This document shows positions 6,301 through 7,681 of a DNA stretch of 64,000 bases, piece by piece. Within the stretch, counting starts at the first letter, position 1. Each line of letters starts with the position of its first letter. The notes beneath the pieces are model-generated. The model was not told where the DNA came from. It ran no database searches and worked only from the letters and a program-made list of their open reading frames with translations. The stretch spans positions 9,486,001-9,550,000 of the forward strand of contig OZ116699.1 in assembly GCA_964199315.1 (NCBI GenBank). Direction: 5' to 3'. Both the position numbers and the translations under genes were made by a program. The stretch comes from Orbicella franksi (lineage: Eukaryota).

Positions 6301-7681
6301 CCAAAACGAAGTCGGTGACTCCCATTTTTTTTTACATTTCTGATAACTAAACCACCATCTTACAGTGGTAAAAGTCTCTTACGTAAATAAACGAGAGACT
6401 GATATTTGACTGATATTGAAAACATTGAACACCATGCGCACGATATGAAACTCTGGGTAACAAAACTTAAAACATGTCCTGTTAAATTAGAGCTTTCATT
6501 TACGTTGCTACTTTAGAGTTGTTTCTTGGTAGATCTAATTCAACTCTTCGGTCTCGCTCGTAAATAGACGTCTGGTTTACCTCCCACAATGTGGGATTTT
6601 TAAGCCTATTAGGTCTATTTGAAGTTTTTGTTTCTCTCAGTTCCTGGGAACTAGCTGGGCGTAGCTAAGTACATTGGCAGCTATACATAGTCAACATTGT
6701 AACGGGTTGTGTTTTAAGCACTAAGTTATAGCGTGACCATTTCTTAGACCCTCCGTCCTCGTCAAGATCCTTTTCGCCAGCTGGTGTTTCTACTCCTCGT
6801 AAACCTAGGACAGTTGGAAGGTAGGCCTGGTATTTTGTTTCTGTTGTATTTTTTAAGCATTCTTGTTGTCATTTTGTATAAAATAGGGCTGACTGTTAAA
6901 TAAGAATAACCGTCATCATAATTATGCGTCATGGAACTCCAGTTCGCAACTTCCGTCATTTGTGTCCTTCCACTTACAAACATTCAACCGTTTAGGAATC
7001 CTAGCAGAAGAAGTTCGATCAAAATTTTGTGTTTGATCTGGGTATTAGCTTCAACAGAAAGTATTTTGTCATTCACTATATTGTATTTTGAACCGTTTAT
7101 TCATACAGAGGCCACCCAGACGGACAGAGTTTTAAACAAAAAACCAGAGAGGTAATCTCACCGTCAGAATTGACATGGTACAAAACAGTCGTAAAACACT
7201 TTCTCCTGGTATACCGTTGAACATCCAACTAACGCTCGTGTGTAAAGCAAGAAAGTGCAAGTGACTCGTGGGATATTCCATGGCATACCACTCGAAAGCG
7301 TTGCATAAAATATATATCATGTTGTCTATGGCCTTTGATGACATGCATAATTAGTCTTTTTGAGGATCGGCGGTTTTAATTAACAAGAATTTAATTAACA
7401 TCAAATTTAGATCATCGCTTATCACACGTTAGTAGGTGCATTAAGATTAATAAAATTTGTCAAAGTTCACTCATTTGTTCAGGCAAAGGTGGAGTGTTTA
7501 TGAGAAATTTACAAAATTAGACACGCTGAACTGTACATCAGTATAAGCAAATAGACTTGTGCCTGTTATAACGAGATAAGTTGTTCCTACAAATCTCATT
7601 TTTTCACCTGGAGAAGGAAGGTGTTTGTGAACCTTTTCAAAGTGCACGTGGGCTTGTTTTTAACTTATTTCTAGGATGTGA

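Follow-up and report, generated by a model that had tools for sequence, protein, structure and literature searches.

The window, a 64,000-nucleotide stretch of Orbicella franksi DNA, is predicted from its splice sites and translations to carry exons 3 to 11 of a scleractinian SH3BP2-family adaptor gene. A conserved and frame-critical exon of only 43 bp encodes the tankyrase motif of this protein and represents a new finding. The coral SH3BP2 members and the expansion of the family into paralogues, all of which keep the motif, are likewise new, and a literature search turned up no publication on coral SH3BP2.

Gene structure and transcript evidence

The predicted gene forms a chain of nine exons on the forward strand, with canonical AG/GT sites, pyrimidine tracts and compatible phases, and maintains a single frame up to a TAG stop at 9451-9453. 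When phmmer was run over the whole library with the proline-rich exon (5201-5643) as query, it retrieved an orthologue, P0001 (417 aa), which shares 80% identity with the window over this exon and 83% over the window translation. The coding sequence of P0001 runs uninterrupted along a Logan contig of 1,968 nt (L002), which is thus a spliced cDNA of a related coral. Aligned to the window with blastn, L002 yields nine blocks, which match the nine predicted exons, the micro-exon included.

3227..3338, + strand: exon, C-terminal half of the PH domain, VCDAQEVSKYAWTFKLIHESYGGKPLFFAVDWELDLK; first in-window exon of the SH3BP2-like gene
3609..3667, + strand: exon, C-terminal helix of the PH domain, QQWEEVITEEKNILCPLAS-G; tblastn with P0001, L002 cDNA block
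5201..5643, + strand: exon, proline-rich linker; phmmer to P0001, L002 cDNA block
6748..6820, + strand: exon of 73 bp, (D)PPSSSRSFSPAGVSTPRKPRTVG followed by AG, bases 1 and 2 of the motif Arg codon; spliced translation, L002 cDNA block
6821..7108, + strand: intron of 288 bp, GT..AG (gtaggc...ttcatacag), interrupting the motif Arg codon
7109..7151, + strand: micro-exon of 43 bp, (R)GHPDGQSFKQKTRE, containing the octapeptide RGHPDGQS; spliced translation, L002 cDNA block
8085..8134, + strand: exon of 50 bp, IVLSTRRLDIDRNEAE-S, SH2 lead-in and first SH2 helix; L002 cDNA block
8263..8329, + strand: SH2 exon, LLQNEHEGVFVLRNSQNVQSGM, bearing the FLVRES-type Arg; L002 block 1485-1554, Pfam SH2 on the orthologue
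9132..9188, + strand: SH2 exon, VLSVATKDEILHSKILYEK; spliced translation, L002 cDNA alignment
9328..9453, + strand: last coding exon, DQGYALADSGPTFHSVEDLLTYYCDSTTTLPRLTRPYKDKS, plus TAG stop; L002 block 1604-1965 aligned to 9326-9694

In the first of these exons the acceptor reads ...tccgtag/G and the donor AAG/gtaagt (slashes mark splice sites). The exon matches P0001 residues 66-113 in tblastn, and L002 block 703-816 aligns to window positions 3225-3338 with 90% nucleotide identity. The following exon ends with two bases of a split Gly codon and is covered by L002 block 815-873 (window 3610-3668); a possible NAGNAG acceptor (cagcag) would explain a one-residue difference to P0001 near 3609. 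The linker exon and the 73-bp exon correspond to L002 blocks 867-1312 (window 5196-5643) and 1311-1396 (window 6746-6827), respectively.

The 73-bp exon ends in ...GTT GGA AG/gtaggc, and the acceptor at 7108/7109 reads ...ttcatacag/A. The micro-exon (A GGC CAC CCA GAC GGA CAG AGT TTT AAA CAA AAA ACC AGA GAG/gtaatc) enters with one base of the split AGA codon for Arg and exits in phase 0. In L002, the corresponding block (1390-1437, window 7107-7154, 94% nucleotide identity) is directly flanked by those matching 6746-6827 and 8083-8135, the latter (block 1433-1485) again being 94% identical. The original prediction had proposed splicing from 6820 to 7109 with the Arg codon divided as AG/A, and both the window letters and the cDNA of the related coral bear this out. 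The spliced translation reads ...PRKPRTVG-R-GHPDGQSFKQKTRE across the micro-exon, appears as ...PRKPRTVGRGHPDGQSFKQKTREIVLSTRRLDIDRNEAES... over the wider region and stays in frame through the SH2 exons. The TAG stop lies 10 residues past the end of the SH2 domain, and the alignment with L002 extends the 3' UTR to at least about 9694. If the micro-exon is left out, the frame reads AG/A TAG and stops at once, and the SH2 domain can thus be reached only with the 43 bases; the earlier claim that skipping breaks the frame, with the micro-exon leaving in phase 0, was correct. Gene finders often overlook micro-exons. Since overlooking this one would truncate the protein ahead of SH2, the 43-bp exon is useful for annotation.

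We did not find the first two coding exons (orthologue residues 1-75) in window positions 1-3226, either by tblastn with P0001 or by blastn with L002. The first 702 nt of L002, which comprise the 5' UTR and residues 1-75, are unmatched in the window, and both exons thus lie upstream of its start. The motif had been placed between a proline-rich region and an SH2 domain, downstream of a PH domain. This order holds in the spliced model and in the Pfam annotation of P0001, with the window itself containing the C-terminal half of the PH domain only (3227-3338 and 3609-3667).

The intron between 3668 and 5200 harbors an open frame of 100 codons on the forward strand (3849-4151) with the acidic tyrosine motifs ETDSYLDSL and GPYEIYQE, which are reminiscent of DDSYLEPD in human and of DGYxxI in the type-B homologues of corals. 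We considered this frame as part of the main transcript and rejected it, as the L002 cDNA joins 3667 straight to 5201. The sole in-phase cassette in it would be 3953-4030, with weak donors, and the frame may represent either an alternative exon or a relic.

RNA-seq from the window species placed no reads on any exon (three polyA runs, sampled at 12-25% of each, and one RNA contig set, over 3701-9700). Joints in this interval fall in intronic repeats only, and the RNA contigs from run X2 align colinearly to the genome, being either unspliced or DNA. The SH3BP2-like gene thus has no detectable expression in the sampled polyA runs, and RNA-seq is silent on its splicing either way. Because same-species reads are absent from the exons, support for the junctions comes from the relative's cDNA and from comparative genomics.

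Relation to SH3BP2 and to other coral genes

Pfam locates a PH domain at residues 25-121 (E 6.4e-7) and an SH2 domain at residues 328-399 (E 2.3e-13) of P0001, and finds the coral family to be devoid of BPS, RA and Phe_ZIP domains. Separate models of the PH part and of the motif-plus-SH2 part were each searched against the AlphaFold/SwissProt collection (550,129 models). Human SH3BP2 ranked third in both cases, with 27% identity for the PH model (query 7-123, human 11-128) and 26% for the motif-plus-SH2 model (query 1-118, human 410-555). It is the only protein ranked high in both lists, and the matched ranges are found at the same ends of the two proteins. As query residue 1 corresponds to human residue 410, the coral motif Arg comes to lie opposite R415. 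In the ESM Atlas, P0008 and P0001 both lie nearest to SH3BP2 clusters from chordates (score 0.93, with 169-176 features shared), ahead of GRB10, SH2B1 and DAPP1 at 0.84-0.88. A PDB profile search matched the SH2 domain of SH3BP2 (2cr4) with 43.7 bits in a single stretch (profile positions 17-118), the longest coverage among the matches.

None of the alignment-based searches placed SH3BP2 first, and three word-indexed homology searches returned anthozoan relatives only and no vertebrate SH3BP2. With the SH2 domain alone, phmmer against the PDB listed SYK, p85 and GRAP2 first, and Foldseek gave generic SH2 matches, with 2cr4 at rank 19. As these matches are generic, the SH2 domain by itself cannot assign the family. 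Single-exon searches of Pfam and the PDB were set aside, the pieces being too short and yielding either nothing or spurious antibody matches to a 'YYC' stretch; P0008 residues 296-345 likewise produced a sole, spurious PDB match to a repeat protein (Crov588). As far as these tools tell from sequence and predicted fold, the coral gene appears to belong to the SH3BP2 family.

We compared the coral protein with human and mouse SH3BP2 (P78314/Q06649). All begin with a PH domain and end with an SH2 domain, and the two are joined by a proline-rich linker, which in coral carries a putative SH3-ligand motif. In coral, the PH domain is evident from Pfam on P0001 and from the fold match to human residues 11-128, and the SH2 domain that closes the protein is encoded by window exons 8085-9453. 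The linker exon contains RAPAPLP, which by inspection fits the SH3-ligand type RxxPxxP; it is unaligned with the human PPAYPPPPVP site and is nearly invariant across the coral family as RPPAPLP. A tankyrase octapeptide is found shortly before SH2 in both proteins (415-RSPPDGQS-F in human, RGHPDGQS-F in coral), and all four residues mutated in human cherubism (R415, P418, D419, G420) are present in coral. The two proteins differ in that their domains share only about 26-27% identity, and in that the coral orthologue has about 417 residues, whereas human SH3BP2 has 561. The motif is separated from SH2 by about 20 residues in coral and about 40 in human, and the coral spacer lacks the DEDYEKV tyrosine site. 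Finally, coral devotes a 43-bp exon to the motif, which in human is part of exon 9 of 13 (PMC3359958). The linker exon at 5201-5643 also encodes HTYVNVP, a pYxN Grb2-type site seen in the window gene's clade only (P0001, P0004, P0005).

In a tree of the coral sequences, the window gene groups with P0001 and P0004 as sister to P0005 from Oculina, and its end branch is short (0.086). Another Oculina patagonica sequence, P0011, is located in the other scleractinian clade. With P0005 and P0011 in separate clades, scleractinians have at least two paralogues, and the presence of one Oculina gene in each clade is indicative of an old duplication. A further homologue, P0018, resembles the published SH3BP2 of Nematostella. 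P0005 and P0011 are on the same chromosome-scale contig of 46.5 Mb in Oculina patagonica, and both keep R-G-x-P-D-G. No genomic loci are on record for P0005, P0011 and P0014.

The tankyrase motif, its conservation and its possible role

The octapeptide RGHPDGQS is encoded by 6819-6820 and 7109-7130 and is located about 20 residues N-terminal of SH2; the coral motif peptide reads KPRTVGRGHPDGQSFKQK. Published binding rules hold that Arg in position 1 and Gly in position 6 are essential, that position 4 is Gly, Pro, Ala or Cys, that position 5 prefers Asp, that position 7 is not Pro, and that positions 2 and 3 may be disregarded (PMC6082341). The coral octapeptide has Arg1 and Gly6, and its Pro4, Asp5 and Gln7 conform to the remaining rules and are identical to the residues in human 3BP2. 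Position 8 is Ser rather than the favoured Asp/Glu, as is also the case in human. By its sequence, RGHPDGQS is thus a consensus tankyrase-binding motif that agrees with every published rule. It is identical to the human motif 415-RSPPDGQS (PMC9688111, Table 2) in 6/8 positions and departs from it only in the tolerant positions 2 and 3. The cherubism mutations (PMC3359958) block recognition of RxxPDG by tankyrase, and 3BP2 consequently escapes ADP-ribosylation and RNF146-mediated degradation (PMC6406327). Other canonical motifs include AXIN1 RPPVPGEE, IRAP RQSPDGAC, NuMA RTQPDGTS and TAB182 RPQPDGEA (PMC9688111, Table 2). Like the coral motif, they combine Arg1, a small residue 4, Asp/Glu5 and Gly6 and are located in disordered regions (PMC9688111; PMC6082341). 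Their host proteins are unrelated to the coral protein, in which motif and SH3BP2 architecture have been inherited as one.

With profile searches, we obtained 14 homologues of full length, all of them anthozoan (Orbicella, Oculina with two genes, Desmophyllum, Pocillopora and several transcriptome contigs). Conservation of the motif was confirmed among these coral homologues, as R-x-x-P-D-G is found in the same place in 14/14 of the sequences, most of which read RG.PDGQSFK. P0018 has RGYPDGRS, and the two most divergent homologues have RGLPDGCE and RRPPDGCE. In P0015 and P0016, QSF has been lost and position 8 is the favoured Glu, with R1, P4, D5 and G6 still in place. These four residues, which are the ones read by tankyrase, are invariant in a linker that is otherwise highly variable and gapped around the motif. 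Most homologues also conserve what comes after the octapeptide, namely F-K-x-K-x-x-E followed by VLPNSAL. AlphaFold2 predicts the motif segment to be disordered (pLDDT <50 for residues 1-29 of the motif-plus-SH2 model). Given the protein composition, 0.0055 occurrences of R..PDG are expected by chance and one is observed, making a chance origin unlikely.

The motif is encoded by a 43-bp exon with a split Arg codon (AG/N) also in Orbicella faveolata (L003, 12931-12973) and in Desmophyllum (L004, 5373-5415), and the preceding intron has an identical position and phase in all three genes. Over 15 codons, the micro-exons of the window and of Orbicella differ by 6 synonymous and 3 non-synonymous changes, which confirms the reading frame and is indicative of purifying selection. 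In the Orbicella faveolata locus (MZGG01000601.1), an intron of roughly 10 kb, largely N-masked, separates the motif exon from the SH2 exons. An Orbicella isoform, X3 (P0009, 366 aa), drops about 39 linker residues and retains the motif exon.

It had been suggested that the motif predates bilaterians. The coral and Nematostella motifs support such an age, but not its novelty: Sowa et al. 2022 aligned the motif RLRPEGKS-F-R of Nematostella SH3BP2 (XP_032222077.1) to human RSPPDGQS (PMC9688111, Data S7), and a pre-bilaterian 3BP2 tankyrase motif is thus already on record. The same study reports no SH3BP2 homologue in Hydra, Drosophila and Amphimedon (PMC9688111). Like the coral protein, Nematostella SH3BP2 has a PH-linker-SH2 layout and a canonical Rxx[ACGP]xG motif followed by ...VLPATSVKLDIE... 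(PMC9688111, Data S7). The window gene belongs to a faster-evolving scleractinian clade, and the direct counterpart of the Nematostella protein appears to be P0018 rather than the window gene; the coral RG.PDGQSF is nearer to the vertebrate motif than Nematostella RLRPEGKS is. Among both paralogues and species, the four cherubism residues are fixed across scleractinians. Our findings thus extend known conservation, open no new kind of mechanism and do not connect the gene to calcification. They favour an origin of tankyrase control of 3BP2 before the bilaterians, as the Nematostella data already implied.

We consider it probable that the coral gene encodes an SH3BP2-family adaptor in which the micro-exon motif acts as a tankyrase docking site and sets the level of the adaptor via PARylation and RNF146. 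By analogy with the mechanism demonstrated for vertebrate 3BP2, the constitutive 43-bp micro-exon would supply RGHPDGQS ahead of SH2, tankyrase would dock on it with its ankyrin-repeat clusters and poly-ADP-ribosylate the adaptor, and RNF146 would then ubiquitinate the modified protein, such that the motif determines its steady-state level. Tankyrases exist in cnidarians, the ARC of a sponge tankyrase binds a canonical motif peptide (PMC9688111), and RNF146-like proteins are listed down to sponge, and together these points make docking in coral likely; degradation of the adaptor would be the most probable outcome. A peptide and a cnidarian tankyrase ARC may provide a simple test system.

The same motif could alternatively bind tankyrase for scaffolding or localisation, as a docking site and not a PAR-dependent degron, given that some tankyrase binders escape degradation and some, such as GMD, inhibit the enzyme (PMC9688111). 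We regard this as unlikely, since in the only family member studied the same motif in the same position is a degron acting via RNF146 (PMC6406327), and RNF146-like ligases are ancient. It is still less likely that the R-x-x-P-D-G island serves a non-tankyrase partner or as a structural lead-in to SH2, with the consensus match being inherited or coincidental and functionless in corals. This would account for conservation reaching beyond the core motif in most members, but the invariant positions, which hold up even in P0015 and P0016, are exactly those that tankyrase reads, and disorder is predicted for the segment.

The remaining two alternatives concern the gene rather than the motif. The window copy might be silent or decaying, its intact-looking exons yielding no protein in the window species, as could be suspected from the missing exon reads in the polyA runs and from the 5' exons not seen within the window. 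The nine exons, however, have neither frameshift nor stop and all of their splice sites are canonical, and the translation retains its 83% identity to an expressed orthologue on a short end branch, which leaves this alternative very improbable. The least probable, and by our estimate one hardly to be expected, is that the coral family merely resembles SH3BP2, by convergent architecture or as a different family such as SH2B, GRB7/10/14 or DAPP1, and acquired its motif on its own. Searches with SH2 only do not single out SH3BP2, and an Orbicella member is named 'PLEKHA6-like' at NCBI. Against this, SH3BP2 alone is in the SwissProt top three for both the PH and the SH2 model, outscores GRB10, SH2B1 and DAPP1 in the Atlas and gives the longest profile match with 2cr4. 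P0018 moreover bridges to the published Nematostella SH3BP2, and the missing BPS, RA and Phe_ZIP domains also speak against these other families.

Our preferred reading, an SH3BP2-family adaptor controlled through a tankyrase docking site, could be carried further. The tankyrase-3BP2 switch might be an ancestral eumetazoan module, with a length- and phase-locked 43-bp 'degron exon' in every coral paralogue whose inclusion serves as an on/off gate. As skipping creates a stop, splicing-coupled decay could make the entire adaptor dependent on exon inclusion, in addition to the control of its level by tankyrase. This extension assumes an expanded coral SH3BP2 family with at least two or three lineages, and we hold it to be unlikely.

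Other features of the window

The intronic repeats at 4300-4700 and 5700-6500 reach a word depth of about 600-1,250 in the X2 RNA contigs and are covered by many partial X24 reads, and most reads on them continue into unrelated sequence. They look like expressed, dispersed, transposon-like elements. Simple-sequence runs of AAC (poly-N/T/Q) and GAA/GAG (poly-E/K/R) are found at 7674-7728, which is intronic, and at about 9700-9770, just past the L002-matched 3' UTR. On the reverse strand, an ORF of 98 codons with an ATG start (2462-2758) is located upstream of the first in-window exon and may be a transposon remnant.
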